Assembly: GCA_965649825.1 (NCBI GenBank)
Contig: OZ287703.1
Coordinates: 186,001 to 250,000, forward strand
Source of the DNA: Penicillus capitatus
Taxonomy: Eukaryota; Plantae; Chlorophyta
Length of the DNA: 64,000 nt
Direction of reading: 5' to 3'
The position numbers and the translations under genes were made by a program. Shown piece after piece: positions 14,541-38,229 of this stretch. The first letter of the stretch is position 1, and every line of letters begins with the position of its first letter. The notes beneath the pieces are model-generated. The model saw nothing but the letters and a program-made list of their open reading frames with translations. It was not told where the DNA came from and made no database searches.

Positions 14541-15677
14541 ATGTCGGCTTCAAGCGCCAGAGAAGAGATTCCAATCTACGTTTTGGAGAGTGGCCAGCTC
14601 TTTGATCCTAATGCCCTTTCTCTGAAAGAGTTTATCGACCCGGTCCTCTCCGCAGATGGCGACGCTGTACATGAGCTTGTCTTGTCAGACGGGTCCGTCG
14701 CAAAAACGCGCTTGGAGCCACGTCTGCGCCGTTTCCCCTCATCCATCCGTTATGACACGCGCGGCCTGGAGCTCTTCGACGAGCTAACGACGCTTGAAGA
14801 TGAGTATTACCTGACGGCATGCGAGAGATCTCTGCTGAAAACGCACATGGATTCTATTGCGGCGCACATTCCCGACGGCGCCGCCATCGTGGAACTCGGA
14901 TGTGGAAGCATGACAAAAACGGCGTTCATCCTTGACCACCTCCGCCGCGTAGCACTGAAAAAGAATCTGCGATTCTATGGCCTCGATATCGACAGCACAT
15001 ACCTGCTGCAGTCTCTTCAAAACCTGAAAGATCAAGAGGCAGAAAAAAATGTTCCTGCTGAAAACGCTATTGCCTATGCGGGTATCCATGGGACATACGA
15101 AGAGTTGGTATCGTTTTTGCCCAAAATCACGGGACCGAGATTCTTCTTGTGGCTGGGATCATCGGTGGGTAATATGACGAGACAGGAGGCAGCTGACTTG
15201 CTGCGCCTCTATGCGCATGCCATGGGTCCTGAAGACGCCTTCATTCTAGCTTCCGATAGACGCAACGATGCCAAGACGGTCTCTCGAGCTTACAACGATT
15301 CAAAGGGAATCATTTCAACCCTTGGCATGAACACACTCGTTTGCCTCAACCGTCTTCTGGGAAGGCCCGTTTTTGACCTCAATCAATTCGAGCGATGGTC
15401 TGGGTACAATGCCGCCGCTGGACGGAACGAGGCTTACATCAGGTCGTTGGTAGATCAGACAGTGTCCATCCCTGCTCCTCACTCTGGGAAGGAGGAAGAC
15501 GTCGAGGTGCATTTGAAGAGAGATGAGCTCATTCATTACCTGGACTCCTTCAAGTACTCTGTGGAGGATCTGAAATCGCTAACGGCAGCGTCTGGGATGT
15601 CCCTGGCCGATTTCTGGACGGATCCGAAAGAGATGTACTGCGCGTCTCTCCTAAAGAGGACGGATGCGGAGGAGTGA
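14541..15677 (+). CDS. EgtD/Methyltransf_33-family SAM-dependent methyltransferase, copy 1 (intronless)
   Basis: 378 aa ORF with YDTRGLELFDELT..EYYLT, SAM motif IVELGCGS, GLDID, WLGSSVGN, AYNDSKG and SFKY. Confidence 0.9.
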   Translation: MSASSAREEIPIYVLESGQLFDPNALSLKEFIDPVLSADGDAVHELVLSDGSVAKTRLEPRLRRFPSSIRYDTRGLELFDELTTLEDEYYLTACERSLLKTHMDSIAAHIPDGAAIVELGCGSMTKTAFILDHLRRVALKKNLRFYGLDIDSTYLLQSLQNLKDQEAEKNVPAENAIAYAGIHGTYEELVSFLPKITGPRFFLWLGSSVGNMTRQEAADLLRLYAHAMGPEDAFILASDRRNDAKTVSRAYNDSKGIISTLGMNTLVCLNRLLGRPVFDLNQFERWSGYNAAAGRNEAYIRSLVDQTVSIPAPHSGKEEDVEVHLKRDELIHYLDSFKYSVEDLKSLTAASGMSLADFWTDPKEMYCASLLKRTDAEE

Positions 15678-15909
15678 AATTCTATCTGCAATTCTTTGAG
15701 GAGTGGCATCCCCGCGGAAACGTGGGTGGACTTAAGTTTAATTTTGAAACATCGAGTGCATTCCATCTCCAACTGCCATGCTGACGGCGACGTGCACGTC
15801 TCTACGTCGCCATCATCGCTTCGATGAGGCTGTCAGCCTCTTTCGTCCACTCGTGCGATAGAAACAGCAGTGCGTAAGTGTCACCTTAGAGGCGTTGGTT
15901 TGGAGAACG

Positions 15910-17523
15910 ATGTTGGTCTACGGTCTGCTGCTTGCGCTGCTGACGTGGGCGGCGGCGCGTGTCCTCTGGCGACGTCTGCGATATGACCTCCATAAGATAC
16001 CCACGCCACGCGGACTTCCTCTTTTGGGTCAGACGCTGGAAATGATTAACATGATCCGACGCAACGAAGAAGAATGTTTTATGCGTGCACGTTGGATGCG
16101 CCAACTCAGATTTTCCAAAATCTTTAGGGTGAGTGGATCCGCTCCTGGAGATGGTTGATGGTTGAGGCAATGTATGGTAGGTGACAATCTTCGGCTCGTC
16201 GATGTTGACGATAACCGACCAACACTGCGCGAAATCTGTCGTGCTATCCCGGTCTGCGGCGTTCCATCGCTCCACATTCGGCGAAAGAGAAATGAGAATC
16301 GTAAGAGATCGTTGTTTGCGTACGACGTCGGCAAGAATGTTCGGCAGCTCGTAGGCCTAAGTTCTAAATCACCAAATCTGCTGACGGCGTCCGCCGTGTC
16401 ACCTTATGTCAAGGCCATACGCAAAGAGTATGCTTCCAGCATGCAAACCAGCAATCTCAAGAAGGCGTTGCCATCGTTATCGAAACTCCTAAACCAATTG
16501 GTCATCACAATCGAAGCACGCAGGACCGAAGGAGCCATTGATTTTCAGCACCTCCTTGTTCGGTTCGCTCTGGACGTCATTGGAGCTGTTGCGTTTGACA
16601 CGACGCTGGGAGGAATGGATGGTAGTGGCAACATCCCAGAGCTTATGATCGAGGTCGGGCACATCTTCAAAGAACGATTATTTGATCCCATCACAACAAC
16701 GTGCTACAAACTCTTCCCTCGCTTGGAAGGCGCACGGAAGAGGCAGAGAGCAATCGATCGTCTGACGCAGGAATACGACAAGATCACTAAAGAGATTCTA
16801 CAGAGAGAAGCGCCGTCAGACGGTTCTCGTCCACTCTGGTTCGGACTACGAAGCTGTTACCATTCAGAGACAGACGTGCCGATGTCATATGATAGCCTCA
16901 GAGCCGAGGTTGCGCTTGTCATTCTTGGAGGAACAGGCACCTCGGCGCACCAGCTCGCGTGGCTCTTCTCTGTTCTAGCCGAGCATCCCCGTGTCGTCGA
17001 CAAGATCTTGGAGGAGCTGAGAGAACGAGGACTCTACGGAGACGGCGCAAGGGAGGTCGTCTTCGAAGATCTGGGAGAACTGCCCTACCTGACAGCCGTC
17101 ATTAAGGAAGGCATGCGGATTGCTTACATCGTCGCATCTACAAGACCTTCGGTGGTTCCGCATGACACAACGCTGATGGGGTATCGAGTCCCGAGGGGCA
17201 CTCTTGTGGTCATTCCGGGTACTCGTTGGATCGGAACGGAGAAGGAATGGGGTGATCCCGACGTCTTTCGACCGGAGCGCTGGTTGACAGATGAAGACAT
17301 GTCCCATGTGCATTACCTTGGATTCTCTTACGGTCCGAGGGACTGCGCCGGACAGAGACTGGCCATGATGGAGATGCGCCTGGTTCTCATCAAGCTGCTC
17401 ACTCAGTTCCGTTTCGAAACTGTCATACCATTCGATGAACTGATGCTCAATGGGAAGAACGGTGTCGTCATCGAATCGGCGAAAGGGATTCCGCTTAACG
17501 TCGTTCTGAGAACGGTGAGTTAA
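15910..17523 (+). CDS. Cytochrome P450, 3 exons (15910-16128, 16181-16300, 16348-17523), about 504 aa
   Basis: TM anchor MLVYGLLLALLTWAAA plus proline hinge IPTPRGLPLLG; ExxR (KEGMR), PERW and heme motif FSYGPRDCAG. Two GT-AG introns (16129-16180, 16301-16347) give one open frame. Confidence 0.92.
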
Positions 17524-17535
17524 AACGTATGTGCT

Positions 17536-19700
17536 TCATAACTCTTTGGCATTAACTAACGCATCCATGTCTTTTTCTTTCCACATTTGCTGTTGGTAAA
17601 CATTATGTGTGGGTTTTTTCGCTTTATCACGAACATTGCCCGAACGCAGTTCCTGTGTGAAGTTTTTTAATCCATCGTAGAAATACAATGTGTCGCTGTC
17701 GGGGATCACAGGAATCGTTAGCGAACTGGCCAATCGATCATGTTGGAAGGCTGCCCATCGAAACTCGGCAGGCGACAAGCCAGAATATTGAAACTTGGGT
17801 ATTCATCTATGTTCTGGCCGTTGAGTGTTGGAGATTGATGGCCTTAGCAGCAGCCGTTCGCGCAGATGATACAAACGACGACGTGATATGGTCGATGAAG
17901 TGGCCGAGCTGCGACCCGATGATGACTCTTCGATCCGTATCGATGCGTCAACGAAGATCGTCGGTGGTCATCTCGCCCTGCTCACAGTTTAAAGACTAAA
18001 AAGGGCAGGTAGTGTCATGGAACCATGTTGGTCGTAGAGTTGCCAGAAATAGCTGTGCTACCAGGTCGTTGCTCGGTAGCTAGAGCGTGTGCTGATCATT
18101 GATTTTGCCGTTGCTCTTTTCCGTCTACGCATACACTTCATCATTTTTTGCCCGAGATAGCATTGCTTGCTGTTCGTTGAAACCCTTCTATCAATGTTTC
18201 TCCCAGAACATTACCCCTCCTCTTTTTGATGTTTTGCAATCAAAATCGTGAGTATCTTCACCGACGTTGACGGCATTCTCTCTTCATTGTGGCCAAGGTT
18301 CCGATTAGATATCAGCGGATTAGAAACACCTTGAATTCTCTACATCGGTTTGTTCTTTGCAGCAAACGTGGTGTCGGGAATCGTGCAAACAACGTCTAAA
18401 AACTCGGGTCGAACTCTTCGTGGTCGATGACGATAGCACACGCTCAGAATTCATACACAAGAACTCGAGATATTTTACGAAGGAAATGAAGCGTTTAAAT
18501 ACCAAGGTGGTTAAGGATTCATAACCTTAGACTCCAACAGCTACGAACTTGTCTATGCACTTGACATCAATATCCCTATTGTTACGTGAAAGATTGAAAC
18601 GAGGTTATCCATTCGTCGCTCTCTATGGCTCTGAGGCGCTTGGATGGTTATTCGGGCGCGCAACAATCGCACTGGTTGTCAAGAGTGATTCGCACGTCTA
18701 ATGTCCATCACGTGGTCACTCGTTTTTGCTCCGATTTGAAACAGCTGATCGGCATGGGAGAGAATGAGCAAGACCTTGACCGAGAGAACGTTCATGCGGC
18801 TCTCGTGGACACAGGCATTGAACCATGACGTCAATTTACGTCAGAAAGACAACGTAAACGGTCGGATAACACCCAGTCCGTCGCGTTTTACTGAACTTAG
18901 CCGCCGATTTTCGTCGTTGAACACGCCTCTCGGCGACCTGCTCTTGTAGCGGTTTGCACCAAGTTTTGAATCAGGATATTCTATAATGATGACAGGACAC
19001 ATGACAGCTTCCACTGTCACATCAAGATTTAAGTCTAATGCGCGCTTGTTGTATTCACTCCTTGCTTCCTTTCCCCTGTAACCCTTTTAGCGTTCATTAC
19101 CTGGATGATATGGTTTCAAATCGAAGGAGCTTCTAGAATCGTAAAATCCGACCGATTGATGTCGCGCAAAAGATCTTGTGTTGCACCTCCGTTTTAACCA
19201 ATTTCGTCCAATCGTCGAGGAATTCGAGATCTTGGATCATCGTTGCAATGTCGACGTTTTCTTGCACATCCGTTCCTTATCGGTCTACCTACGATCAGCT
19301 TCGCATAGTCCTTTTGACTAAAGCCTTCTTCTGTAAACAACTCTACCCACCGATTTAAAGCCGGGATTTTCTTCAGTGGGGAAGGCTCGCAACACGGAGT
19401 ACCGGTAACAATCATCAAGGCCCGCTCAAAATGCCGACCATATCTCGACTCTCTTCAATTGCAGTCTATTTCTTGCAACTCTTTTTAGCGCACAATTTGA
19501 TTGACCATCTTTTGTACAAGAGAACATCACCGTTGATTGACTTGACGTTAACTTCTATACCGACGCCCCGATGCCTATGCAACAATATCCATACGGTTCT
19601 TCCCTTCTTACGGCTTCGACGTGTTCAAGCAATTCGGCGACACCCTTGGTCCTAGAACATCTTTACACAACAGCGTGTGAGTACAAATAGACTGTGATGA
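17536..19700 (-). pseudogene. Decayed coding-like remnant of unknown family (part is duplicated at ~30912-31850; an inverted diverged homolog lies at ~34540-34800)
   Basis: Chain of short minus-strand frames broken by stops. Homology is visible by eye between 18490-18665 and the reverse complement of 34620-34800 (ttaaatacc..ggtggtt, tccaacag, ccctattgtta, gcgcaac). Confidence 0.35.
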
Positions 19701-20229
19701 ACCAATCAATTACTTAGACCTGTCGATCGTTTCGCTCGCACAGTCAATTTTTCTCACGCGAGTCTCGCGTTCGTTCGGCTGATGATTACTGCCATGTGCT
19801 GTTCAGCAAGCTTTAAAGGTGCACTTATCAGTTTTAAGTGAAAATCCGTCCCTGCCTTCTGATCGGGTTGGGCTACAAATAAGGAGAACGCGGTAAATGT
19901 CAAATGTGTCACTTCTCCGTTGTCGCCTCTGGGAACATAGCATTCATTGTCAGTTCCACAAACACCGGACTTGCGTCAACATCGAATCTTGCAACCTGGG
20001 AACACGAGAGAATGGCCCGAGTTAACGAAAAATGTAGCAGTGGAAACTGGCTGTCTCCCCTGTTGGGCAGGTGTCGCTTCGCGAAAGCCCGAAACGTCAA
20101 CAGATTGTTTTCTTTGTTTGACGATGCCGTCTGGACTAAGAAAAGCTGAAGCGCGGTCACGCTCAAGCGCGTGTAGAACAAGCGTATAGATGTTTAGGTT
20201 CTTTGACGTTTAACAGATTGCAAGTGTTA

Positions 20230-21369
20230 TCAACTCAACTTAACTGCGACCACGTTCTTGAGAAGGCCGAAGCAAAACATTCCCTTCGGATCTGTCCAAA
20301 CTTGTTTGATCGTCATTCCAGCGGTCGCCGACAGATCTTGAAGATCGCCTGCCGAGTACTTGACGGAGAAGTGATAGAGTATCAGTTCGTCTGTCTTCAA
20401 CTTCACGTCGACGCTCTTTTTGCTATCTCCGGAGAATGGCGGGGGGATTGTTATCGTCTGGTCGGAGAGAGACTTTATGTAGGACTCGTACTGGCCGTCC
20501 TTGACGTTGTATCCAGACCATCTCTCGAACTTGGTGACATCGAAGACGTTCTTTCCGAGCAGACGATTGAGACAAACGAGGGTGTTCACGCCGAGGGCGG
20601 CGATAATACCCTTAGAGTCGTTGTAGGCACGAAGGATCGTTTTCGGATCATTTCGCCTGTCAGCCGCCAGAAAGAAACCGTCTTCCGGCTCCATCGCGCC
20701 GCCATAGAGTCGCATCAAATCAGCCGCCTCCTGCCTCGTCATGTCGCCCACAGATGATCCCAGCCACAGGAAGAACCTTGGCCCGGGAATGTTCGGCAGA
20801 AAGGAGACCAGATCCTCGTAGGTTCCGTGGATGCCGGCGTAGGAAAAGTTCCACTCTCCAGACGCGTCGTCTGCCTCCACCTTCGCTCTCAGATTCTCCA
20901 GAGACTGGCGGAGGTAGGTGTCGTCGATGTCGAGACCGTAGAACCTGAGACTCTTCTTCTTGGCGACGTTGCGGAGGTAGTCAAGGATGATGGCTGTCTT
21001 CGTCATGCTGCCGCATCCGAGCTCCACGATTGCGGCGCCGTCGGGGATGTGTACTGCGATCTCATCCATGTGTGTTCCGAGAAGGGATCTCTCGCAGGCT
21101 GTCAGATAGTACTCGTCTTCGAGCTTCGTCAGCTCCTCGAACAGCTCCAGGCCTCGCGTGTCGTAGCGCAGAGGCGTGGTAAAGCGCCTTCGGCTTCGAT
21201 CGGTCGAAACGCCGACGACAGTGCCGTCGGCGAGCGTCAGCTCACGAGCGTCTTCCGCGATCGCCCCGGGGTTGATGAAGTCCTTCAGCGGGAGCTCGTC
21301 GGAGGCGAACAGCTGCCCGTCCGTCAGAACGTGGACGGGGACGTCCTCCGCCAAGCCTTCTGTCGTCAT
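20230..21369 (-). CDS. EgtD-family methyltransferase, copy 2 (intronless)
   Basis: 379 aa ORF with the same family motifs; has GSSVGD where the other types have GS(S/T)(V/I)GN. Confidence 0.9.
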   Translation of the reverse strand: MTTEGLAEDVPVHVLTDGQLFASDELPLKDFINPGAIAEDARELTLADGTVVGVSTDRSRRRFTTPLRYDTRGLELFEELTKLEDEYYLTACERSLLGTHMDEIAVHIPDGAAIVELGCGSMTKTAIILDYLRNVAKKKSLRFYGLDIDDTYLRQSLENLRAKVEADDASGEWNFSYAGIHGTYEDLVSFLPNIPGPRFFLWLGSSVGDMTRQEAADLMRLYGGAMEPEDGFFLAADRRNDPKTILRAYNDSKGIIAALGVNTLVCLNRLLGKNVFDVTKFERWSGYNVKDGQYESYIKSLSDQTITIPPPFSGDSKKSVDVKLKTDELILYHFSVKYSAGDLQDLSATAGMTIKQVWTDPKGMFCFGLLKNVVAVKLS

Positions 21370-22463
21370 CTCTCCTTCTGCTGCCTCTAAGCACGACGCC
21401 GAGAAGAACCGTCAAGAATACAGCGAACGTCGGATAAACGAGGCTGGAGGACGGCGAACGAATGCTCGCCGAAGAAGATTCGCTTCGTACGCGAGCGCCT
21501 GTAGTACAATCTTGGATACGTGGATGGCTCTAACGAGGCCATCTGGAGCGTCCCTGTCTCCTCACAACACGGATGCAAGCAGTGGAGGCCTGTGGTGAGG
21601 CGTCTCTTTTCCGACTCCCTCATCGTGACTGTCTGCGCTTGTCATTCTGTCTGGCTTCCTTTCCTAACGCACTACACAGCACCAGCGAACATACAATGGG
21701 GGGTATTGCGTTCTGGGTCTGCAGTGGTCGTCCCTTCGTCACAGTGAACCAGGAATCCAGCACCTGTCACTTCGAGAAGCCATTCTGCCTGTTCTGAAAG
21801 TCTTCTTGAGAACAGCTTCTCGCTCTTCGTCGGGGTGAATATCATTGGCTGCCTTCATTCTAATCACAGAGGAAGCAACGAATGGCTTCTGGGATCTCTG
21901 TGTTCCTGCAGGTCGGACATGTCTCTCCGTGTTGATGTGCTGTCTCGGCGTGATGTAACCTGTCGGGAGGCATTTGATGCCCTGCGTTAGGGATTCCAGC
22001 TTTTGCTCTGATTTCTACTGCAGTGGTACGGGCCTTAAAGATAAAGGCGATAGAGGCGACCGATGTGATTTAGTAACGCCGACCTTATCGCAATGACGTC
22101 AAAACGTGTTTGCGAGAAAAATGGACTAAAACCGAATAGAACATTTCCGAACTGTATTTGGGCGTTCCTTTAAGTGTCAAGTCAAGATGGCTGTTACGGC
22201 AGCCTTCAACGGCGGAATAGCGTATGGTTTTTCATTTTTAGCATGCATGTTCGTTAGTACGCGTTCCATAACGCTTCGGTAGTATTCGCTGACCTTTTAC
22301 CTCCAGGCGTTTCTAATTGCTATCGTTTGTTGAACACCTCGTCTGTGCAAAAACGTCTCGCTGGTCGTGTTGTCGGACCGAAGAGTATCTTTCTCAGTTT
22401 TCGACCGGCAAGCATAAGACGAAGGCATTAAGCGTAGCAACAACACAGTGTTTATTCGTGGAG

Positions 22464-23600
22464 ATGGTATTAAATGTTCAAACTCAAGAAATCCCTGTCT
22501 ACGTGTTGCCAGGAAGTCGACATTCTAACTATGATGTGTTAGTGCTCCTCGACGGATTCATAAATCCGCTCCCTTGCTCAGGGGATAGCGTGCGTGAGAT
22601 GACTTTGCCTGGCGACAGAGTGGAAAAGATTCATCCGGAACTGCGCCGCCGTAGCTTTCCATCGTCACTTGTTTACGACACGCGAGGCCTGGAACTGTTC
22701 GAGGAGTTGACGAAGCTTGAAGACGAGTACTACCTCACCGCCTGCGAGAGATCCCTCCTCAGAACACACATGGATGAGATCGCAGTACACATTCCTGACG
22801 GCGCCGCCATCGTGGAGCTCGGCTGTGGCAGTATGACGAAGACAGCCATCATCTTGGACTACCTCCACAACGTCGCCAAGAAGAAGAATCTCAGGTTCTA
22901 TGGTCTCGACATCGACGACACGTACCTCCGCCAGTCTCTGGAGAATCTGAGATCTGTCGTTGAGAAAGAAGACAGGGACGCCGAATACACGATCTCTTAT
23001 GCTGGCATCCATGGGACCTTTGAGGAGCTGGTCTCCTTCCTTCCTAACATCCCTGGTCCGAGGTACTTCCTCTGGCTGGGGTCCACCATTGGTAATATGA
23101 CGAGGCATGAGGCAGCGGATTTGCTGCGCCTTTATGGCAATGCGATGGAGCCGGCAGATGGTTTCTTTCTTGCAGCGGACAAGCGCAACGATTCGAAGGT
23201 TATCGTGGCTGCATACAATGATTCTCAAGGCAGAGTCGCCGCTTTCACCATGAACATTCTTGTCTGTTTGAATCGTTTGCTGGAGCAGAATGTTTTTGAT
23301 GTGACGAAATTCGAAACTTGGTCTGGATATGATATCGCAGCTGGGCAGAATGAAGTGCATATCAAGTCGCTGGTCGACCAGACCGTTGTGATCCCTGCGC
23401 CCTACTCAGGAGGCGTGGAAAAGAATGCGGAAGTGCACCTGAAAAAGGATGAGCTCATACTGTTTTTCGTCTCCGTGAAGTACTCTAGAGAAGACCTCAA
23501 AACCTTGACTGCCGCTGCTGGACTGACGGTCGAACAGAACTGGACAGATCCAAAAGAGATGTTTTACTTTACTCTTCTTAAGAAGAGCGTTAGATATTAG
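22464..23600 (+). CDS. EgtD-family methyltransferase, copy 3 (intronless)
   Basis: ATG at 22464 (MVLNVQTQEIPVYVL) aligns with the N-termini of the paralogs; VELGCGS, WLGSTIGN, AYNDSQGRVAAFT and SVKY. Confidence 0.9.
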   Translation: MVLNVQTQEIPVYVLPGSRHSNYDVLVLLDGFINPLPCSGDSVREMTLPGDRVEKIHPELRRRSFPSSLVYDTRGLELFEELTKLEDEYYLTACERSLLRTHMDEIAVHIPDGAAIVELGCGSMTKTAIILDYLHNVAKKKNLRFYGLDIDDTYLRQSLENLRSVVEKEDRDAEYTISYAGIHGTFEELVSFLPNIPGPRYFLWLGSTIGNMTRHEAADLLRLYGNAMEPADGFFLAADKRNDSKVIVAAYNDSQGRVAAFTMNILVCLNRLLEQNVFDVTKFETWSGYDIAAGQNEVHIKSLVDQTVVIPAPYSGGVEKNAEVHLKKDELILFFVSVKYSREDLKTLTAAAGLTVEQNWTDPKEMFYFTLLKKSVRY

Positions 23601-25871: not shown

Positions 25872-28800
25872 CATACGTTTCGGGTGCAAACTTCGAAAAT
25901 AAAAACCGTCATTCTTCGCTTCGCACTTCAATCATAGTTCTCTTTAATTCTGCTTGAGTGAACTGGATTCCTCACTGGCCCATGAACACGCCATCTGCAT
26001 CTCCCTATCCTCTCTGCTAACATGTATGGACCTCTCCAGGCTGCAGGTTTGTCCGCTTCTGGGTAAAAGACTAGCACTCTTCTTCCCGTTCTTAAGAATG
26101 ACGATGGGGCTGCGATTTTTCTGCGGCTTCGCTTCATTTTGTCTTCCCTTGATTTTCTGCAATTTTGGATCGCCTTTGCTCTCCATATCTTCAGTCTCTC
26201 GTCGTCGATTCGTTCTCCATTTCGTGTCACGCCCCAGAAGAGCTCATTGGGCGTATATTTCGTTACGCCATGAACGGCATCATTGATTACGTCCTCGAGG
26301 CGCTTGCGGTCGATCGGGAGCTCTTGGTTCGCGGTCATCTTTTCCACTCTCGTCTTGATGTTCCCGACAAGGCGCTCCACCCGGCCATTAGTATTCGCGG
26401 TATAGGTGGGAGAATAGTAATGTGTGATCTGCCGCTTAGTGCAAAAGGCACGCAATCGACGACCACAAAGTGCTTGGCCTTGATCCAAAAATATAGCTTT
26501 TATGCCTCCATGTCTTGCCACGGTAGCATTCCGCCACCTCGTGAGGGCCTTGATCACGGTCTCTTCGTTTGGGTGCGTCGTTATCGTTATCTGGCAGACC
26601 TGGTTAGTCCGTCGACGATTGCTAAGACGTGCTTGTTCTTCTTTTGATATCTTCTAAGCTTGATTGGTCCTAGGAAGTCGAGGAACAACATGTGGTTTGC
26701 CACGAGGCATTCGATGCATCTCCATTCGTCTCTAAGACGGGGTCTGACTCCCCTTTGACAACCCTCGCATCTTCGCACGAACTCTTCAACATCCGTTCGG
26801 GCCGATGGCCATATGCTTCCGTCCCTTTTGAGGTGCTCCCATGTTCGGCTGGAGTTCCAATGACCGTCGTGGGCTGTTCTCAGTCGTTCTGTCTGTTGCT
26901 CTGTGAGAAATGTCGTTGCTGCCTTTTCCAATGATGGCCATCGGCTTAAGACATCTGCCACCCCGTTGGATGCACCGGGAAGGTAGCACACTTCAAGTCT
27001 GGAGGGGATCTCGAAGTTCGTCCAAATCCAATCGAGCAGTCTGGACACCCTTGCGTCGAGGAGTGACCGGCTTCGTGGTGTTTCCATTACGCATTGTATA
27101 CGCTTTGGGAATCTGTCCACACCACTATTCGCGTTCCTGCTGTCATGACCTTTACCTCCTCGAGGGCCCAACAAAGCCCTCTCAGTTCCCCAAGCATGCT
27201 GCTCACAGTGCCGTTGGCTTCACGACGACTGTTGATTCCGATCAACAGTCCTTCGCTCATCGGTCCTGAGAACAGAGCATATCCGGTTCCTACGCCGCTC
27301 CAGTCGACATAGAGGTGCGATTCCTTCGTCGCATTGGTTGGTAGTCGATGCAGTGACATCGAGTTACGCAGCACCAGTTCCCATACTTCCCTTGTCTTCC
27401 TCTGCAGTGTGGCGAGATCTGATCGATCCTTTCCGGGAGACTCGGTTCTTTTTGTAAAGGCTCCAGTCACTGGCTTAGTCTGTGACATGTGGGTCGACAG
27501 ACGTTCAGTATTACGATCATCTTCTGCAGTTGATGCTTCGACGTCGATATGGACACTTGGGTGCATTGCTTGCGAATGTAACTCTCGAGGCTGAACGTTG
27601 ATTCTCGGACACCGTACCCCAGAAAAATCACTTGCTTTTCACAGAACTGCATCTTCTGTCGATTGGTGTGAAGGCAGTGGGCCTCCATCACATTTAATAC
27701 TTCTTCCAGATTGTTGTCATGTTCTCCTTGATCGCGTCTGCCAATCAAGATGTCATCTTGAAAGATGACTGACAGCTTGGGGGTCTCGAAGACCGAGCGC
27801 AGACGGCTAAGGAACAGCGAAGGGCTGCATGACCATCCCATCGGAAGGCATTTGTATGTCCACCTCTTTCCTTGGTGCTCGAATCCGAATAGCTTCTGGA
27901 GGGCATCGCAAACCTGTAGGTGAAAGAACCCACAGTCTAAGTCTAGGACAGTAAACCTGTCCCACTCGACTGGTATGGACGATACTGTCTCTCTCACGCT
28001 CGTCATTTGAGCCTTCCACGTTCGGCAGTATGTACTCAAGAGCCGGAAGTCGAGCGTCTTGCGTGCGTTCCCGTTGGGCTTTTTGACCCATATTGTGGGG
28101 CTCGGAAAGACCCTTTCACCAGGCCTCACTCTTCTAATGACCCCACGCGCCTCCATATCGGCGAGCACTTCGTCGGCTTCTTTGGTAGACGTCCCCAGTC
28201 TCATATCGAGCGCCTCTATTGCAGCTTGGAATGTCTGCCACGTCTTTCAGCCACTCGATCTCTTTGAGGCATATCTTCAATCGTGCGATCGGCTTGCCCA
28301 CGCCGAAGATGCCTTTGGAGAATACCGCTGGGTATTTCTGCACAAAGTGATCCAGATCGGCTTTCTCCGAGTGGGCTGATGCTGAGACGAGACTCATCGA
28401 AGGATTCTCGTCTTCTTCGTGGGACGCTTTCGGCTCGCTGATGTCGAATCGGCTCTCCGGTGTCTTGATGAGTGCCGCTGCCTTGAGTTTCGGACTCAAC
28501 AATTTGGCTTCGTCGGCAGAATTATAGATTTGGACTCTTACCGTTCCTTCATTGGACAGGGAAACGGAAGCTAGTAGGTTACAGACCTGTAGCACTGGCA
28601 GCACGCCTTGGATCCCGTCTCCTACCACGCTGGACGGTAGAACCAGGATTTTTGTTTCCTTGAGGCCCATCACGGTGGACCTTCCGAGGGGCAAGTGAGC
28701 TCGGTTGCCCACGACTGCGACACGCGCCTGTTAAAGTGACGGATTGACTACTGCCCTGAGTCAATCATGTGACGATTCGAAAGATGCGGCGAAAATGAGT

Positions 28801-29821
28801 CGACGGCATTATTTATGCGCATACCGTATTTGCACAAGAGATTATTGGCTGATTGTCTGAGAACTTCAACCCTGTAACCCGCGATCACAATTGATGTCGT
28901 CTGGGCGTCGAAGCGTTCGCTTCGTCCTGGGCCCGATTCGGCATTTCACAGCGCCTTATTCCTTTGGCCGAAGATGGAGATCTCTACTATACGGTGAGCG
29001 GCGGATCTCCCCTGGATTCTTGGCTCTGGGGCTGTAGGCAGTGCCGACTAGTATAGTCACCGCGAGCTGCAACCACGCGATAATCATTGTGTCAACTGTA
29101 CAGGGTAACAATGCAGTGTCCGCCTTTTTTATTCGCATGATTGTCTAGATCATAAAATTAGGCTCACAGGGGCCGAGGTCCCCAGAGCTAGCAGTTTTTT
29201 GCAGCTGAGCTTTTGAGGCTGCATGGCAGAAGAGTCTCTCTCTGCATGGTCTCTGCAGGTATTCCTCGCTGCAGTTGATGCTGAACTCGAACTGACGTAA
29301 GGCTGGAGTGCCCAGTATCGTTTTTCCCAGTTGGGGAACAACCAAGTGCGTCACACTCTTCTCTGAGTTCCCGAGGTGAGTGTTCAGGGTAGTCTGCCCA
29401 AGAACGGGTAGACCCTCGCCTGAGACTCCGTAAACTTCCGTAACGTCGCAAGGCACTGCTGAACGCTCGATCTTTTCGCAGATCCTTCTGGACATCAGGT
29501 TTGCGGACGACCCGGAGTCGATGAGAAATTCCCGGGCCCAAGGCTCGTTTTCGATCCGCCCTTGCACGTGCGTGGAGGAGAGGTCTCCCGTTGCCCCTTT
29601 CCGTTCCACTGACCGCCGCCGTTGTCGGCTGCTGAGAGCACCCTTCATCTGTCCGAACTTCCCCTCCTCTGGGAGAGGACCGGCCACTTCTGAAGCTGAA
29701 CTCATCGTCAATGTCCGATCCCATGCAGGTGGACGCTGTATATGCTCTGTCTTTTCGCTGTTTGGGGCACTCATCCTTCCAGTGCATCCCACGGCATATA
29801 GGACACGGAGCGATGGGCTTG

Positions 29822-30775
29822 CTAGGTCTGGCAGGGCAAGCCCAAATCGGATGATCGTCTCCCCCACATCGTTTGCATCGCTTCCCTCTCGGAGTTCCTC
29901 CGTCCTTTCTCGGAGAAGCAGAGGGTCCGGGAGAATCGAATGAGCGTCGGCGGCTGCGGGTCGGGTTTGTCGACCCTGGAGCCTCGTTTTTCGTCCGAGG
30001 CCAGCCTTAACTCCCTCAGGGCATTCTTTACCTCCCTGAGTTCTTGTCTGAGGTCGTCGTCATTGACTTCTGGCTCGCTTTCCCACTGCAGGCGTCGAAG
30101 GAGTTGGATAAACTGTTGGATGGCTATTCCCAACACCACCCAGATTGGCAGATGGAAATACCACTTTACCACAGCCTTACAGCCTCTCCACATGGCCGTC
30201 GCCTTCAGCTACATCAGGCAGAGCACATTTGTGACGATGAATGCCACGCAGAGGTATAAGATCGTCCACATGATGCGGAGCGACGTGCCTGTGTCCGTCG
30301 CCGCCGCTGTGATGAAGTCGGCGACTGAGGTTCCGATCCAATGGAAGGTTGACCGCCACATCCCGATTTCGAACGCGCCGGCATCCGGCGCAGTAGGCCT
30401 GTCTTCAGCCTTGGAGTGGTCGCGGCAGAGAACCATGCTTTCCAGAACTTCCATCGACGCCCCCGTCGTAGACTCGGCCGTTTCTTCACGACATGGACAG
30501 CATGTAGCCGGACGTTTGCGCAGTCTAACCGACTCTCCCAACAGCTGGTCTTTGTCTTCTCGGCACTCCGCGTTCTCTTGTCGCAAGAGCTTAATGGTCT
30601 GCATTGTCTCCGCCACGTTCTGCCTGGCAGTCATCTCCAAGCCTTCGTTGGACGTATCGTCGCTTGTCGCTGCCTCCGCTTGGACACCTTTGTCGCAATA
30701 AAGGAGTATTGCCACCATCACAGCCATGACCGTCCGTCTGTCCCCATCGCTCCGAAACCAGATGTCATTGCTCAA
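29822..30775 (-). pseudogene. Retroelement ORF1: hydrophobic leader, coiled coils and two predicted TM helices; interrupted by one in-frame TAG at 30209-30211
   Basis: ORFs 30209-30775 and 29822-30193 share a frame (LCLM*LKATAMWRG). Hydrophobic stretches are MAVMVAILLYC, WTILYLCVAFIVTNVLCLM and WYFHLPIWVVLGIAI. Confidence 0.6.
30749..30760 (-). promoter_or_regulatory. Primer binding site (initiator tRNA-Met-like)
   Basis: Minus strand reads TGGTTTCGGAGC, 2 nt inside the 5' LTR; this is two mismatches from the plant iMet PBS TGGTATCAGAGC. Confidence 0.7.
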
Positions 30776-30911
30776 ACGTTTTTCTTAAAAAAGAGATTCC
30801 CTCCTTGTTCATGCCCCTCCTTTAATACCTCCTGATCAGGAGGGGCGACTAAGCGTCATTGATCCGATGACCGAGATTAGTCATCGTGATAATAATGTCT
30901 ACAGGAGCCCA
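30763..30911 (-). repeat. 5' LTR (~149 bp, TG...CA)
   Basis: Direct repeat of 25722-25871; followed on the minus strand by a PBS after a 2-nt spacer. Confidence 0.85.
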
Positions 30912-32381
30912 TGGGAGAGAATGAGCAAGACCTTGACCGAGAGAACGTTCATGCGGCTCTCGTGAACACAGGCATTGAACCATGACGTCAATTTACGTCA
31001 GAAAGACAACGTAAACGGTCGGATAACACCCAGTCCGTCGCGTTTTACTGAACTTAGCCGCCGATTTTCGTCGCTGAACACGCCTCTCGGCGACCTGCTC
31101 TTGTAGCGGTTTGCACCAAGTTTTGAATCAGGACATTCCATAATGATGACAGGATACATGACAGCTTCCACTGTCACATCAAGATCCAGGTCTATGCGCG
31201 TTTGTTGCATTCACTCCTTGCTTCCTTTTCCCTGTAACCCTTTCAGCGTTCATTACCTAGATGATATGGTTTCAAATCGAAGGAGCTCCTAGAATTGTAG
31301 AGTCCGACCGATTGATGCCAAAAGATCTTGTGTTGCACCTCCGTTTTAACCAATTTCGTCCAATCGTCGAGGAATTCGAGATCTTGGATCATCGTTGCAA
31401 TGTCGACGTTTTCTTGCACATCCGTTCCTTATCGGTCTACCTACGATCAGCTTCGCATAGTCCTTTTGACTAAAGCCTTCTTCTGTAAACAACTCTACCC
31501 ACCGATTTAAAGCCGGGATTTTCTTCAGTGGGGAAGGCTCGCAACACGGAGTACCGGTAACAATCATCAAGGCCCGCTCAAAATGCCGACCATATCTCGA
31601 CTCTCTTCAATTGCAGTCTATTTCTTGCAACTCTTTTTAGCGCACAATTTGATTGACCATCTTTTGTACAAGAGAACATCACCGTTGATTGACTTGACGT
31701 TAACTTCTGTAACGACGCCCCGATGCCTATGCAACAATATCCATACGGTTCTTCCCTTCTTACGGCTTCGACGTGTTCAAGCAATTCGGCGACACCCTTG
31801 GTCCTAGAACATCTTTACACAACAGCGTGTGAGTACAAATAGACTGTGATGAACCAATCAATTACTTAGACCTGTCGATCGTTTCGCTCGCACAGTCAAT
31901 TTTTCTCACGCGAGTCTCGCGTTCGTTCGGCTGATGATTACTGCCATGTGCTGTTCAGCAAGCTTTAAAGGTGCACTTATCAGTTTTAAGTGAAAATCCG
32001 TCCCTGCCTTCTGATCGGGTTGGGCTACAAATAAGGAGAACGCGGTAAATGTCAAATGTGTCACTTCTCCGTTGTCGCCTCTGGGAACATAGCATTCATT
32101 GTCAGTTCCACAAACACCGGACTTGCGTCAACATCGAATCTTGCAACCTGGGAACACGAGAGAATGGCCCGAGTTAACGAAAAATGTAGCAGTGGAAACT
32201 GGCTGTCTCCCCTGTTGGGCAGGTGTCGCTTCGCGAAAGCCCGAAACGTCAACAGATTGTTTTCTTTGTTTGACGATGCCGTCTGGACTAAGAAAAGCTG
32301 AAGCGCGGTCACGCTCAAGCGCGTGTAGAACAAGCGTATAGATGTTTAGGTTCTTTGACGTTTAACAGATTGCAAGTGTTA

Positions 32382-33521
32382 TCAACTCAACTTAACTGCG
32401 ACCACGTTCTTGAGAAGGCCGAAGCAAAACATTCCCTTCGGATCTGTCCAAACTTGTTTGATCGTCATTCCAGCGGTCGCCGACAGATCTTGAAGATCGC
32501 CTGCCGAGTACTTGACGGAGAAGTGATAGAGTATCAGTTCGTCTGTCTTCAACTTCACGTCGACGCTCTTTTTGCTATCTCCGGAGAATGGCGGGGGGAT
32601 TGTTATCGTCTGGTCGGAGAGAGACTTTATGTAGGACTCGTACTGGCCGTCCTTGACGTTGTATCCAGACCATCTCTCGAACTTGGTGACATCGAAGACG
32701 TTCTTTCCGAGCAGACGATTGAGACAAACGAGGGTGTTCACGCCGAGGGCGGCGATAATACCCTTAGAGTCGTTGTAGGCACGAAGGATCGTTTTCGGAT
32801 CATTTCGCCTGTCAGCCGCCAGAAAGAAACCGTCTTCCGGCTCCATCGCGCCGCCATAGAGTCGCATCAAATCAGCCGCCTCCTGCCTCGTCATGTCGCC
32901 CACAGATGATCCCAGCCACAGGAAGAACCTTGGCCCGGGAATGTTCGGCAGAAAGGAGACCAGATCCTCGTAGGTTCCGTGGATGCCGGCGTAGGAAAAG
33001 TTCCACTCTCCAGACGCGTCGTCTGCCTCCACCTTCGCTCTCAGATTCTCTAGAGACTGGCGGAGGTACGTATCGTCGATGTCCAGACCGTAGAACCTGA
33101 GACTCTTCTTCTTGGCGACGTTGCGGAGGTAGTCCAGAATGATGGCCGTCTTTGTCATGCTGCCGCATCCGAGCTCCACGATGGCGGCGCCGTCAGGAAT
33201 GTGTACTGCGATCTCATCCATGTGTGTTCTGAGAAGTGATCTCTCGCAGGCTGTCAGATAGTACTCGTCTTCGAGCTTCGTCAGCTCCTCGAACAGCTCC
33301 AGGCCTCGCGTGTCGTAGCGCAGAGGCGTGGTAAAGCGCCTTCGGCTTCGATCGGCCGAAACGCTGACGACAGTGCCGTCGGCGAGCGTCAGCTCACGAG
33401 CGTCTTCCGCGATCGCCCCGGGATTGATGAAGTCCTTCAGCGGGAGCTCGTCGGAGGCGAACAGCTGCCCGTCCGTCAGAACGTGGACGGGGACGTCCTC
33501 CGCCAAGCCTTCTGTCGTCAT
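32382..33521 (-). CDS. EgtD-family methyltransferase, copy 4 (3 aa different from copy 2)
   Basis: 379 aa ORF differing from copy 2 at GVST->SVSA and LLGT->LLRT. Confidence 0.9.
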   Translation of the reverse strand: MTTEGLAEDVPVHVLTDGQLFASDELPLKDFINPGAIAEDARELTLADGTVVSVSADRSRRRFTTPLRYDTRGLELFEELTKLEDEYYLTACERSLLRTHMDEIAVHIPDGAAIVELGCGSMTKTAIILDYLRNVAKKKSLRFYGLDIDDTYLRQSLENLRAKVEADDASGEWNFSYAGIHGTYEDLVSFLPNIPGPRFFLWLGSSVGDMTRQEAADLMRLYGGAMEPEDGFFLAADRRNDPKTILRAYNDSKGIIAALGVNTLVCLNRLLGKNVFDVTKFERWSGYNVKDGQYESYIKSLSDQTITIPPPFSGDSKKSVDVKLKTDELILYHFSVKYSAGDLQDLSATAGMTIKQVWTDPKGMFCFGLLKNVVAVKLS

Positions 33522-35049
33522 CTCTCCTTCTGCTGCCTCTAAGCACGACGCCGAGAAGAACCGTCAACACTATAGCGAACGTCGGATCGACGAGGCGGGA
33601 GGACGGCGAACGAATACTCGCCGAAGAAGATTCGCTTCGTACGCAAGCGCCTGTAGTACAATCTTAGAGACATGAATGGCTCTAACGAGGCCATCTGGAG
33701 CGTCCCTGTCTCCTTACAGCACGGATGCAAGCAGTGGAGGCCTGTGGTGAGGCGTCTCGATTCCGACTCCCTCATCGTGACTGTCTGCACTTGTCATTCT
33801 GTCTGGCTTCCTTTCCTAACGCACTACACAGCACCAGCGAACGTAGAATGGGGGGTATTGCGTTCTGGGTCTGCAGTGGTCGTCCCTTCGTCACAGTGAA
33901 CCAGGCATCCAGCACCTGTCACTTCGAGAAGCCATTCTGCCTGTTCTGAAGTCTTCTCGAGAACAGCTTCTCGCTCTTCGTCGGGGTGAATATCATTGGC
34001 TGCCTTCATTCTCTTCGAAGAGGAAGCAATGAATGGCTTCTGGGATCTCTGTGTTCCTGCAGGTCGAACATGTCTCTCCGTGTAGATGTGCTGTCTCGGC
34101 GTGATGTAACCTGTCGGGAGGCATTTGATGCCCTGCGTTAGGGATTCCAGCTTTTGCTCTGATTTCTACTGCAGTGGTAAGGGCCTTAAGGATAGAGGCG
34201 ATAGAGGTGACCGATGTGATTTAGTAACGCCGACCTTATCGCAATGACGTCAAAACGTGTTTGCGAGAAGAATGGACTAAAACCGATTAGAGCATTTCCG
34301 AACTTTATTTGGGCGTTCCTCTTTTAAGTGTTAAGTCAAGATGGCTGTTACGGCAGCCTTTAACGGCGGAACACCGTTGCGGTGTCAAACGCCCTTCGAC
34401 ATACGAACATAAATACGACCTCGTTCCGTGACATCAGAACGGTATTCGACGTCCAGATTTGACATTGTGTCGATTTTCTTTCGGCGTGTACATTGGCGGA
34501 GTCCGTAGCGCTCTAGTGCTCTTTCGTTAACTTGCTACCTTCCGATGTTTATAATTGCTATCGGTTGTTGAAGACCTTGTACTGGAGATGTAGCGTCTAA
34601 TGCGTTGTTCGTAGCCGTCGGAAGCGGTTGCGCGTCATGTTAACCACCTCGGCGCGCTAGCCATCAGCTGCGACGGATGCTAGTCTCCGAGTCAACCATC
34701 TTTTAACAATAGGGTAATGGTTTTCGAACAAGCCTTGAACTTCTCGACTGTTGGATGTTATGGTTAGGGAACTCACAACCACCGTGGGTATTTAAGGGTG
34801 ACATTCCCGTTGTAAACAATCTCGAGTTCCTGTGTTATAATCTGAGCGTTCGTCTGCGTCGTCGTTCGCGCGTCTCTCGACTCCGAGTTTCTCTAAAGCG
34901 ATTACACGATCCTGACACCTTGTCTACACAATAACGTCACGTTGCTCGTGTTGTTGGACCGACGAGAATCTCTTTTGCGTTTTTCGAGTGGCAAGTATAC
35001 TACGATGGGCAAGGCGCAGAGCAAAAACCGCGTGTTCATTCGTGGAGAA

Positions 35050-36192
35050 ATGGCATTCAATGTTCAGACTCAAGAAATCCCTGTCCATGTGTTGCTAGGA
35101 AGCCGACATTCTAACCGCGACGTGTTAGTGCTCCTCGACGGATTCATAAACCCGCTCCCTTGCTCAGGGGATGGCGTGCGTGAGATGACTTTGCCTGGCG
35201 ACAGAGTGGAAAAGATTCATCCGGAACTGCGCCGCCGTAGCTTTCCATCGTCACTTGTTTACGACACGCGAGGCCTGGAACTGTTCGAAGAGCTGACGAA
35301 GCTCGAAGACGAGTACTACCTCACCGCCTGCGAGAGATCCCTCCTCAGAACACACATGGATGAGATCGCAGTACACATTCCTGACGGCGCCGCCATCGTG
35401 GAGCTCGGATGCGGCAGCATGACGAAGACAGCCATCATCTTGGACTACCTCCGCAACGTCGCCAAGAAGAAGAATCTCAGGTTCTACGGTCTCGACATCG
35501 ACGACACGTACCTTCGCCAGTCGCTGGAGAATCTGAGATCTGTCGTTGAGAAAGAAGACAGGGACGCCGAATACACGATCTCTTATGCTGGTATCCATGG
35601 GACTTTTGAGCAGCTGGTCTCCTTCCTTCCTAACATCCCTGGTCCGAGGTACTTCCTCTGGCTGGGGTCCACCATTGGTAATATGACGAGGCAGGAGGCA
35701 GCGGATTTGCTGCGCCTTTACGGCAATGCGATGGATCCGGCAGATGGCTTCTTTCTTGCAGCGGACAAGCGTAATGACCCCCGAACGATCGTTCGTGCTT
35801 ACAATGATTCTCAGGGCAGAGTCGCCGCTTTCACCATGAACATTCTTGTCTGTTTGAATCGTTTGCTGGAGCAGAATGTTTTTGATGTGACGAAATTCGA
35901 AACTTGGTCTGGATATGATATCGCAGCTGGGCAGAATGAAATGTACTTCAAGTCGCTGGTCGACCAGACCATTGTCATCCCTGCTCCATACTCGGGAGGC
36001 GTCAAAAAGTATGCAGAAGTGCGCCTGAAAAAAGATGAGCTCATACTGTGTTTCGTCTCCGTGAAGTACTCTAGCGATGATCTAAAACTCCTAGCTGCTG
36101 CTGCTGAGTTAGCCGTTGCACAAATCTGGACCGATCCACAAGAGATGTTCTATTTTGCTCTCCTTAGGAAAAGTAGCAGCACCAAAGAATGA
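35050..36192 (+). CDS. EgtD-family methyltransferase, copy 5 (paralog of copy 3)
   Basis: ATG at 35050 (MAFNVQTQEIPVHVL); family motifs intact; QNEMYF and LCFVSVKY differ from copy 3. Confidence 0.9.
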   Translation: MAFNVQTQEIPVHVLLGSRHSNRDVLVLLDGFINPLPCSGDGVREMTLPGDRVEKIHPELRRRSFPSSLVYDTRGLELFEELTKLEDEYYLTACERSLLRTHMDEIAVHIPDGAAIVELGCGSMTKTAIILDYLRNVAKKKNLRFYGLDIDDTYLRQSLENLRSVVEKEDRDAEYTISYAGIHGTFEQLVSFLPNIPGPRYFLWLGSTIGNMTRQEAADLLRLYGNAMDPADGFFLAADKRNDPRTIVRAYNDSQGRVAAFTMNILVCLNRLLEQNVFDVTKFETWSGYDIAAGQNEMYFKSLVDQTIVIPAPYSGGVKKYAEVRLKKDELILCFVSVKYSSDDLKLLAAAAELAVAQIWTDPQEMFYFALLRKSSSTKE

Positions 36193-37071
36193 AAACAAAC
36201 CTCGACATATGCGCTTGTATGATGTCTGTCTCAGTGATTTCCTGAGCAGTGATGGGGGTCCTCCCGATTTCCGTCGTGATTTGGTATCATCTACTGGAGC
36301 ACCGTTCGAACTGTATTATAAGTTTCATTGATTATCTGAACGAATATTACATCGCACTAGTTTAAGAATTTAAATCCGTTTCGACTAGGACGATCTCAGT
36401 TGTTACACCTCATTAAGCAAAACTCACTTCCATAAAGCAAATTGATTAAGTAATAAGATTTGCTCGATTATTTTTGTGTACGTCGAATTACAGTATTCGT
36501 GTCTGTCAGCGACGGAGTTCAGCCGACACTCAGCTTCATCGAACAAGTGTTGTGCACGTGCAAACATAGATCACACAGAGTCTTCCCAACACAGCGCATG
36601 AACTTAAAGTTTCGTCAATTCTCTTCACAGTGACTAGTCGATCAGCCTAAAGAGTTCATCCGCTTCACGATCTCAAGCGTCGAGAATGCCAAACCCCGTA
36701 TGTGTGATGTCACACAAAAGACATCAATCAGTCTGGAGACGAGATGATGTCTTCGAGGGATATGTGAGGGTGATATCGAAGGTATGAAGGCATGAGACCC
36801 GTGTCAATAGAGCAATGCGACGGTAACTTAAGGAGTAATGCACCATCGCCGACTTCGGCGTCACCTAGAACAGCGTAAGCAAAAATAGAACGTCGACATC
36901 AAAGAGCGGCGGTTTAAGCTCAGAGCCGTTTTCGATTTTGCGGTTTGAGCCGATTAAATAGCCGGTTAAATTTTCGTTGTTTGTTAGACTGCTTCACGAA
37001 CACGACCTTTAGCGTCTCATCCTTTTCAGTTTGACTGTGGACGCATTTTGCTCGTATTGCACGTAAATCAA

Positions 37072-38229
37072 ATGTTAGGGCTGAGAGGAATAGATTCCAA
37101 CGATTGGCGCGAAACCATTCCGATCCACGTTTTGGAAGGAGGCCAGCTCTTCGACCCCAACGAGCTCTCTCTCGACGAATTCATAAACCCAAGTTGTTGC
37201 TCGGCGAATGACATCCGCGAGTTGTTCTTGCCTGGTGGCATACTGAAGAAGATCTATCCAGAACAACGCCGCCGAAGCTTTTCGTCGTCTCTGCTGTACG
37301 ACACGCGAGGCCTGGAGCTGTTCGAAGAGCTGACGAAGCTCGAAGACGAATACTACTTGACGGCCTGTGAGAAATCCCTACTGAAATGTCGCTTGCGCGA
37401 GATCGCAGTACACATTCCTGACGGCGCCGCCATCGTGGAGCTCGGATGCGGCAGCATGACGAAGACAGCCATCATCTTAGACTACCTCCGCAACGTCGCC
37501 AAGAAGAAGAATCTCAGGTTCTACGGTCTCGACATCGACGACACGTACCTTCGCCAGTCGCTGGAGAATCTGAGATCTGTCGTTGAGAAAGAAGACAGGG
37601 ACGCCGAATACACGATCTCTTATGCTGGCATCCATGGGACCTTTGAGGAGCTGGTCTCTTTCCTTCCTAACATCCCTGGTCCGAGGTACTTCCTCTGGCT
37701 GGGGTCCACCATTGGTAATATGACGAGGCAGGAGGCAGCGGATTTGCTGCGCCTCTATAGAGAAACAATGGAGCCGGAAGACGGCTTCTTTCTGGCAGCC
37801 GACAAGCGTAATGACCCCAGAACCATCGTCCGTGCCTACAACGACTCGAAGGGTATCATCGCCGCCCTCGGCATGAACACCCTTGTGTGTCTCAACCGTT
37901 TACTAGGACAGAACGTCTTCGATGTCACCAAGTTCGAGAGATGGTCTGGATACAACATTGCTGACGGCCAGAACGAAGCCTACATCAAATCGCTAACCGA
38001 TCAAAAAATCGTGATCCCTGCACCCTTTTCAGGAGACAAAGAGAAAAGTGCCGAGGTGCACTTGAAGAAGGACGAATTGATCCATTACCTCTATTCCGTC
38101 AAGTACTCTTCAGAAGATCTCAAAACCTTGGCTGTCGCTGCTGGACTGACGGTCGAACAGATCTGGACGGATCCGAAGGAGATGTTTTATTTCACTCTCC
38201 TTAAGAAGAGCAGCAGCACCGAGGAATGA
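37072..38229 (+). CDS. EgtD-family methyltransferase, copy 6 (mosaic)
   Basis: First in-frame ATG at 37072; the core at 37401-37755 is nearly identical in DNA to copy 5, while the flanks resemble copies 1, 2 and 3. Confidence 0.88.
   Translation: MLGLRGIDSNDWRETIPIHVLEGGQLFDPNELSLDEFINPSCCSANDIRELFLPGGILKKIYPEQRRRSFSSSLLYDTRGLELFEELTKLEDEYYLTACEKSLLKCRLREIAVHIPDGAAIVELGCGSMTKTAIILDYLRNVAKKKNLRFYGLDIDDTYLRQSLENLRSVVEKEDRDAEYTISYAGIHGTFEELVSFLPNIPGPRYFLWLGSTIGNMTRQEAADLLRLYRETMEPEDGFFLAADKRNDPRTIVRAYNDSKGIIAALGMNTLVCLNRLLGQNVFDVTKFERWSGYNIADGQNEAYIKSLTDQKIVIPAPFSGDKEKSAEVHLKKDELIHYLYSVKYSSEDLKTLAVAAGLTVEQIWTDPKEMFYFTLLKKSSSTEE

Follow-up and report, generated by a model that had tools for sequence, protein, structure and literature searches.

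Which substrates would be served by a tandem set of six EgtD-family methyltransferases that have lost the residue pair by which EgtD recognizes histidine? This question is raised by a locus of the green alga Penicillus capitatus, located in a window of 64,000 nucleotides (GenBank assembly GCA_965649825.1, contig OZ287703.1, positions 186,001 to 250,000 of the forward strand); "the window" refers to this whole stretch, and coordinates are counted from its first letter. Between 14.5 and 38.2 kb, the window holds six complete open reading frames (ORFs) of the EgtD family (PF10017, Methyltransf_33), each of 378-385 codons and without internal stops. They are intronless, unlike the housekeeping genes of the window (COPB', importin-alpha, NRAMP, PGM and PP2C), which are split by introns. 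The window is nuclear DNA, and the COPB' exon has its best named matches in Viridiplantae, at 52-63% identity. The array is a lineage-specific tandem set of stand-alone methyltransferases that depend on S-adenosylmethionine (SAM). With a probability of about 0.6, judged from the predicted binding pockets, the six enzymes are N-alpha-methyltransferases of free non-histidine alpha-amino acids that fall into three pocket classes and probably prefer hydrophobic or aromatic side chains. The six genes, with residues numbered as in EgtD, are as follows.

14541-15677, plus strand: c1, methyltransferase; PF10017 match of 247 bits, phmmer against EgtD E=2.5e-30; class A pocket (I213, L216, G217, A252 and L282, with N166)
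20230-21369, minus strand: c2, methyltransferase; PF10017 match of 231 bits; class B pocket (I213, L216, G217, S252 and H282, with D at 166)
22464-23600, plus strand: c3, methyltransferase; PF10017 match of 262 bits, ATG start checked; class C pocket (V213, F216, T217, V252, H253 and F282)
32382-33521, minus strand: c4, methyltransferase; PF10017; class B pocket, three residues apart from c2, none of them in the pocket
35050-36192, plus strand: c5, methyltransferase; PF10017; class C pocket (V213, F216, T217, M252, Y253 and F282)
37072-38229, plus strand: c6, mosaic methyltransferase; PF10017; class A pocket (I213, L216, G217, A252 and L282)

All six copies match the PF10017 profile at 231-262 bits (cutoff 23), with profile positions 9-303 of 304 covered, and c2 and c3 are transcribed divergently. 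By tblastn, no further copies or fragments of either the methyltransferases or the neighboring cytochrome P450 were found in the window, which brings the total to six methyltransferases and one P450. Antisense ORFs of 115-231 codons recur opposite the methyltransferase copies (20203-20757, 20827-21390, 22665-23360, 32355-32909 and 35251-35598); these have no independent support and probably just reflect codon usage on the sense strand.

EgtD residues were mapped onto the six copies by three alignments (pairwise phmmer to PDB 4uy7 and 4pim, MAFFT L-INS-i and hmmalign), all of which agree. They reproduce exactly the list of pocket residues (56, 206, 213, 217, 252, 282 and 284) that a first-pass annotation of this DNA had drawn up. 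Between c1 and the Mycobacterium smegmatis EgtD chains (4uy7 and 4pim), the phmmer alignment has an E-value of ~1e-30 and is ungapped around the motifs. Residues Y39, F47, Y56, G161, Y206 and S284 are invariant in c1-c6. In EgtD, Y56, Y206 and S284 contact the substrate carboxylate and N166 contacts the alpha-amino group, while T213 positions an imidazole-bound water and E282 is among the important residues (PMC8593015). G161 is also counted among the amino-group contacts (PMC8593015 and PMC9103826). The alignments thus confirm that the carboxylate contacts are kept in all six copies and that the histidine-recognizing pair T213/E282 is lost in all six, both as the first-pass annotation had claimed. 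From c1 to c6, position 213 (T in EgtD) reads I/I/V/I/V/I, position 217 (N in EgtD) reads G/G/T/G/T/G, position 252 (M in EgtD) reads A/S/V/S/M/A and position 282 (E in EgtD) reads L/H/F/H/F/L; position 166 is N in c1, c3, c5 and c6 and Asp in c2 and c4. Structure prediction, which had been suggested as a check, was carried out for c1 alone, and the AlphaFold2 model (predicted local distance difference test score, pLDDT, 87; predicted template modelling score, pTM, 0.85) adopts the EgtD fold. Its top 15 Foldseek matches in the PDB are all EgtD (E ~1e-26; target-normalised TM-score 0.80-0.88). Because the residues that bind the amino-acid backbone are kept, while hydrophobic side chains or a histidine stand in for T213 and E282, non-histidine amino acids are the most likely substrates.

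How many specificities the array might hold depends on how the pockets are grouped. The pocket table upholds the earlier claim that the side-chain subsite differs between copies; the accompanying estimate of at least four distinct specificities is too high, since the sequences give three pocket classes, with c2 equal to c4. Class A consists of c1 and c6, class B of c2 and c4, and class C (V213, F216, T217, V or M at 252, F282) of c3 and c5. The two class B genes share 98.6% nucleotide and 99.2% amino-acid identity and have identical pockets, and the pocket differences between c3 and c5 are confined to 252-254 and 281. The subsite has turned apolar in classes A and C and carries a histidine in class B. 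That changes at 252 and 282 can switch EgtD specificity, another point of the first-pass annotation, is confirmed by a structure found among the Foldseek matches, PDB 4pip, which is EgtD M252V,E282A with tryptophan. No substrate can be read from sequence. Direct observations cover the residues, the fold of c1, selection, mosaicism, synteny and the position in the tree; the substrate class, the differences in specificity between classes and any role of the P450 are what we infer.

The weight of these replacements depends on how constant the same positions are across the family. When 1.84 billion cluster representatives were searched with the family profile, 8369 members were found, and pocket residues were tabulated for 174 sequences, consisting of the best 150 of the 8369 cluster representatives and closer homologues from a separate search. 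T or S at 213 occurs together with E282 in 147 of the 174 sequences, so that losing both T213 and E282 sets the window copies truly apart from the histidine-type enzyme. Among these 147 histidine-type sequences, N166 and F216 are each found in 146, N217 in 74 and M252 in 53. The changes at 217 and 252, which had also been taken as loss of histidine recognition, are consequently uninformative in this respect, and the combination of G217 and A252 is ordinary in the nearest histidine-type eukaryotic relatives (e.g., P0274, with T, G, A and E at 213, 217, 252 and 282).

Variation among the six copies is concentrated on the side-chain side of the pocket. All seven positions of the side-chain subsite (213, 216, 217, 252, 253, 282 and 283) vary, compared to 42% of alignment columns overall (hypergeometric P=0.002, for a list of seven positions that is partly post hoc), and one of the six backbone contacts varies. 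The varying contact is residue 166, a position that the first-pass annotation did not list. In EgtD, N166 controls how the amino group is bound and how catalysis advances from one to the next of three methylations (PMC9103826). This residue is near-invariant in histidine-type enzymes and is replaced not only in c2 and c4 (Asp), but also in P0001 (Ser), the c1 ortholog of a related metagenomic organism, and in other members of the clade (Ser, Met or Asp; e.g., P0010, P0012 and P0013). Asp166 in class B, and Ser, Met or Asp at this position in other clade members, may lead to fewer or more methyl transfers.

The evolutionary history of the array also bears on whether the pocket classes are maintained. 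Self-BLAST of the window and annotation of the intervening sequence identified the following features.

18753-23584: duplicated unit, first copy (c2 and c3)
25193-25624: separate reverse-transcriptase fragment, between the duplicated units
25722-30911, minus strand: degenerate gypsy-like long terminal repeat (LTR) retroelement, with RVT_1, RNase H, Integrase_H2C2, rve and Asp_protease_2 domains on broken ORFs
30910-36170: duplicated unit, second copy (c4 and c5)

Within the duplicated units, identity is 97.6% between 18753-22217 and 30910-34371 and 90.4% between 22334-23584 and 34915-36170; c2-c3 and c4-c5 are a recent segmental duplication, which the first-pass annotation had missed, as it had the gene conversion among the copies. 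The retroelement ends in 150-nt repeats (25722-25871 and 30763-30911, 81% identical), and the right repeat abuts the second duplicated unit.

The copies are under purifying selection, with pairwise ratios of non-synonymous to synonymous substitution rates (dN/dS) of 0.05-0.21 wherever dS is measurable (0.07 for c2 versus c4); dS is saturated between c1 and the other copies. Pairwise and regional dN/dS and the enrichment test were used because a codon-model test for positive selection at pocket sites would be unreliable with six sequences and pervasive gene conversion. Among c2-c6, dS is 0.26-0.47 in the SAM-binding core (alignment columns 60-160), whereas in the C-terminal, pocket-bearing half it is saturated or >1.2 for every between-class pair. 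A sliding window along c6 shows nucleotide identities of 96-100% to c5 and 93-99% to c3 at codons ~105-210, while the C-terminal half of c6 is nearer to c2 but has the same pocket residues as c1. Gene conversion homogenises the cofactor domain, and the pocket-bearing half stays old and divergent. The c3 and c5 genes, at 91.3% nucleotide identity, show extra divergence in the pocket-bearing half; small conversion tracts part the two, with similarity to c6 at codons ~225-255 in c5 and over the final ~50 codons in c3. The persistence of three pocket types fits selection for distinct pockets, with chance placement of tract boundaries as the alternative.

Directly downstream of c1 lies a gene of another family.

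15910-17523, plus strand: cytochrome P450 (PF00067, 199 bits), with an N-terminal membrane anchor

Its first exon (~15910-16128) encodes the membrane anchor, one or more introns lie within ~16129-16310 and the main exon extends to 17523; full-length P450 homologues align to 15958-17520. The sole in-frame stop falls inside a GTGAGT...TAG segment, whose length differs from that of the orthologs by a 7-nt indel. The possibility that the P450 is a pseudogene was rejected, since the segment is bounded by GT...AG and its indel is not a multiple of three, which makes the stop intronic. A 52-nt GT-AG intron would by itself shift the frame, which calls for a second intron or a different splice site. 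The P450 introns are very short (~45-55 nt), and a prokaryote-style gene call starts downstream and misses the anchor. The nearest named homologues are green-algal hypothetical proteins with 28% identity, and the PDB relatives are generic CYP3/11/17-type enzymes, which is uninformative as to function.

In the related metagenomic organism (ERZ26696514), a syntenic site (L004), beside a phosphoglucomutase (PGM) gene and an isoamylase-like gene, carries a class A methyltransferase, a P450 and a class C methyltransferase. The c1 ortholog of this organism, P0001, is 92% identical to c1 with the same residues at 213, 217, 252 and 282 (Ser166 and Tyr283 are also found), and its class C counterpart, P0007, shares 71-73% identity with c3 and likewise has F282. 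A second methyltransferase-P450-methyltransferase copy lies ~66 kb away (L002 and L003), with the class C gene broken: in L002, 14156-15344 has a frameshift near 14905, and in L003, 14156-15343 is represented by two ORFs split near 14815; the L004 copy (P0007) is intact. As the module occupies a syntenic site, it is ancestral to both organisms, and class B, c6 and the duplication were added in the lineage of the window. The ancestral module would have been a class A methyltransferase, a P450 and a class C methyltransferase, to which a class B gene, a mosaic sixth gene formed through gene conversion and the recent c2-c3 duplication, now flanking the retroelement, would have been added later.

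The wider surroundings of the array were also surveyed. Directly upstream are genes of starch and glycogen metabolism, namely two of the alpha-amylase family (isoamylase-like) and a phosphoglucomutase gene (2978-3751, 8428-9393 and 11391-13442), with the same neighbors in L004. Directly after c6 follows an NRAMP metal-transporter gene with several exons (38851-41058); in the related organism, fragments of a major facilitator superfamily (MFS) transporter are found downstream of the module instead, and the array ends at a synteny break. The subfamily to which the P450 belongs is much expanded in related metagenomic eukaryotes, and near one P450 paralog (P0032, locus L007, ~70-90 kb from the window) lies a pyrroline-5-carboxylate reductase gene. 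From JGI metagenomes, further context was limited to three contigs of 1.3-1.7 kb.

Several points weigh against the reading of the six genes as methyltransferases of free non-histidine amino acids in three pocket classes. The residue equivalences to EgtD rest on sequence alignment and a global fold match, not on three-dimensional superposition, and the literature-defined trio of 213, 252 and 282, although it varies at three of three positions, gives a weak enrichment (P=0.07). The combination of L, H or F at 282 with I or V at 213 is unlike the tryptophan-type signature, in which T213 is kept and A282 is found (PDB 4pip and P0307 from the fungus Galerina marginata), and because of this difference analogy cannot name the substrate. 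The c2-c3/c4-c5 duplication is known from metagenome assembly alone. With regard to the genomic context, P450 paralogs with 79% (P0036) and 85% (P0032) identity occur elsewhere on the same contig, P0032 without a methyltransferase neighbor, and the homologous genes of Bryopsis are solitary and have no P450 neighbor, unlike the window array. The link to the P450 is narrow, and weaker than it seems at first sight. A stepwise or combinatorial pathway, as put forward in the first-pass annotation, would draw its sole contextual support from this narrowly conserved P450 neighbor, in the module shared with one related organism.

An alternative is dosage amplification, in which six enzymes would act on one substrate and the pocket differences would be neutral or kinetic, giving more flux into, for example, an osmolyte betaine. 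The near identity of c2 and c4 and the 90% protein identity of c3 and c5 show that part of the array is simple duplication, and the cores are kept alike by gene conversion. Nonetheless, classes A, B and C differ at every position of the side-chain subsite, including in charge and size at 282 (L, H and F), their pocket-bearing halves diverged anciently yet are under purifying selection, and classes A and C are each kept as separate genes in the related organism; amplification for dosage is hence considered improbable. Doubtful as well is an account in which the substrate is something other than a free proteinogenic amino acid (e.g., an amino acid modified by the P450, a peptide N-terminus or an amine), or in which the copies perform successive methylations on one scaffold. 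It would be consistent with the P450 being a conserved neighbor in two organisms and at three loci, with the relaxation of N166 in the clade, as in c2, c4 and P0001, and with the presence in the family of a protein annotated as a dimethylallyltryptophan (DMAT) N-methyltransferase (P0307, by its UniRef name). Fungal EasF, a member of the EgtD family, N-methylates prenylated tryptophan. On the other hand, the invariant carboxylate triad and G161 argue for an alpha-amino acid with a free carboxylate, the one P450 paralog locus examined has no methyltransferase, and no prenyltransferase, non-ribosomal peptide synthetase (NRPS) or precursor-peptide gene was found among the window ORFs scanned.

Decay of the duplicates, or a six-copy arrangement that is partly an assembly artefact of haplotypes joined in tandem, is very improbable. 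Such an explanation could draw on the metagenome assembly at 30x, on the retroelement between the duplicated units and on the broken class C copy of the related organism. It is opposed by six complete ORFs with invariant catalytic and SAM motifs and low dN/dS, as well as by the units themselves, which show 2.4-9.6% divergence and lie in a 495-kb contig with ~7 kb between them, made up of unique sequence and the retroelement.

The array has a number of implications. Five distinct, compact and intronless candidate genes, which lend themselves to direct expression and in which the backbone scaffold is constant and the side-chain subsite differs, represent a natural experiment, and their activities could take the EgtD specificity code past histidine and tryptophan. 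A conversion-homogenised domain beside a divergent domain is also relevant to how enzyme families diversify in tandem arrays. An unlikely extension is that the pocket classes are new EgtD-family specificities that, with the conserved P450, would make a hitherto undescribed green-algal family of N-methylated or betaine amino-acid metabolites. In a speculative version, a quaternised aromatic amino acid would lose trimethylamine to yield an acrylate unit, which would then be coupled or oxidised by the P450. Were this true, the acrylate route could be relevant to caulerpin and other indole-acrylate-derived products of siphonous green algae. To our knowledge, many amino-acid betaines and N-methylated alkaloids occur in marine and freshwater algae, and the enzymes that make them are mostly unknown. 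In literature searches, no report was found that deals with algal EgtD-like enzymes or with the biosynthesis of caulerpin, and searches for non-histidine EgtD-like enzymes and for hypaphorine or tyrosine-betaine synthases found only an EgtD inhibitor paper, reviews and the paper on the fungal enzyme TrpM. A paper on lysine trimethylation in muscarine formation was set aside as a precedent, as EgtD is cited there by analogy only.

Comparison with known members of the family places the window genes in a green-algal group. Close homologues are few, and the named ones come from Caulerpa lentillifera (P0271 and P0012) and Bryopsis sp. KO-2023 (P0272 and P0011). The C. lentillifera genes g613.t1 and g2081.t1 and the Bryopsis genes BSKO_05818 and BSKO_11097 belong to the same clade as the window genes, with 39-45% identity, and are likewise stand-alone; the Bryopsis homologues are also intronless. 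The pockets of these Bryopsidales homologues differ from those of the window copies, with F, L or N at 213 and M, I or S at 282; the histidine pair is mostly lost, but BSKO_11097 keeps T213 and E282, unlike the window copies. A class-A-like pocket (A,L,G,A,M) is seen in two further sequences, P0006 and P0008, at 53-57% identity.

In a neighbor-joining distance tree without support values, the non-histidine clade is nested among eukaryotic histidine-type sequences, and its neighbors include Egt1-like fusions of 810-872 amino acids (P0273 from Euglena gracilis and P0274 from another eukaryote). These Egt1-type fusions share an N-terminal extension with the window genes (profile match from positions 18-24) and resemble class A in having G or A at position 217 and A at 252. 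By contrast, they keep T213, E282 and a C-terminal EgtB-like domain, whereas the window genes stand alone and lack the histidine pair; when the EgtB-like parts of P0273 and P0274 were used as tblastn queries, no EgtB-like sequence was found in the 64-kb window (best E=0.12). The most economical reading would be that an Egt1-type methyltransferase domain gave rise to a stand-alone copy, which ceased to recognize histidine before radiating in green algae.

EgtD itself (M. smegmatis and M. tuberculosis; PDB 4pim, 4pin, 4uy7 and 7scf) has the Pfam family, fold and SAM motif in common with the window copies at 28-33% identity. The backbone contacts Y39, Y56, G161, Y206 and S284 are common to EgtD and all six copies, and N166 is shared by four. 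Relative to EgtD, T213 and E282 are replaced in all six, F216 is changed to Leu in four, there is an N-terminal extension of ~30 residues and the window has no EgtB, EgtC or EgtE partner or fusion. Among tryptophan N-methyltransferases, TrpM of Psilocybe serbica, a stand-alone enzyme derived from an ergothioneine gene, and engineered EgtD M252V,E282A were retargeted by pocket changes at 252 and 282, a route that the window genes would share. Since TrpM was compared here through the TrpM-like G. marginata protein P0307 rather than through the Psilocybe sequence, its signature is given for P0307 (T213, A217, A252 and A282), which matches the logic of the tryptophan-binding M252V,E282A variant; Rhizophlyctis P0291 also has T, A, A and A, whereas the window copies have I or V at 213 and L, H or F at 282. 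Fungal TrpM arose from a duplicated ergothioneine gene, independently of the green-algal route (PMC11659798). The TrpM gene is single, fungal and without a linked P450, while the window genes form a green-lineage array of independent origin. Substrate switching in the EgtD family is known; what is new is a green-algal radiation with new pocket signatures in a six-gene array.

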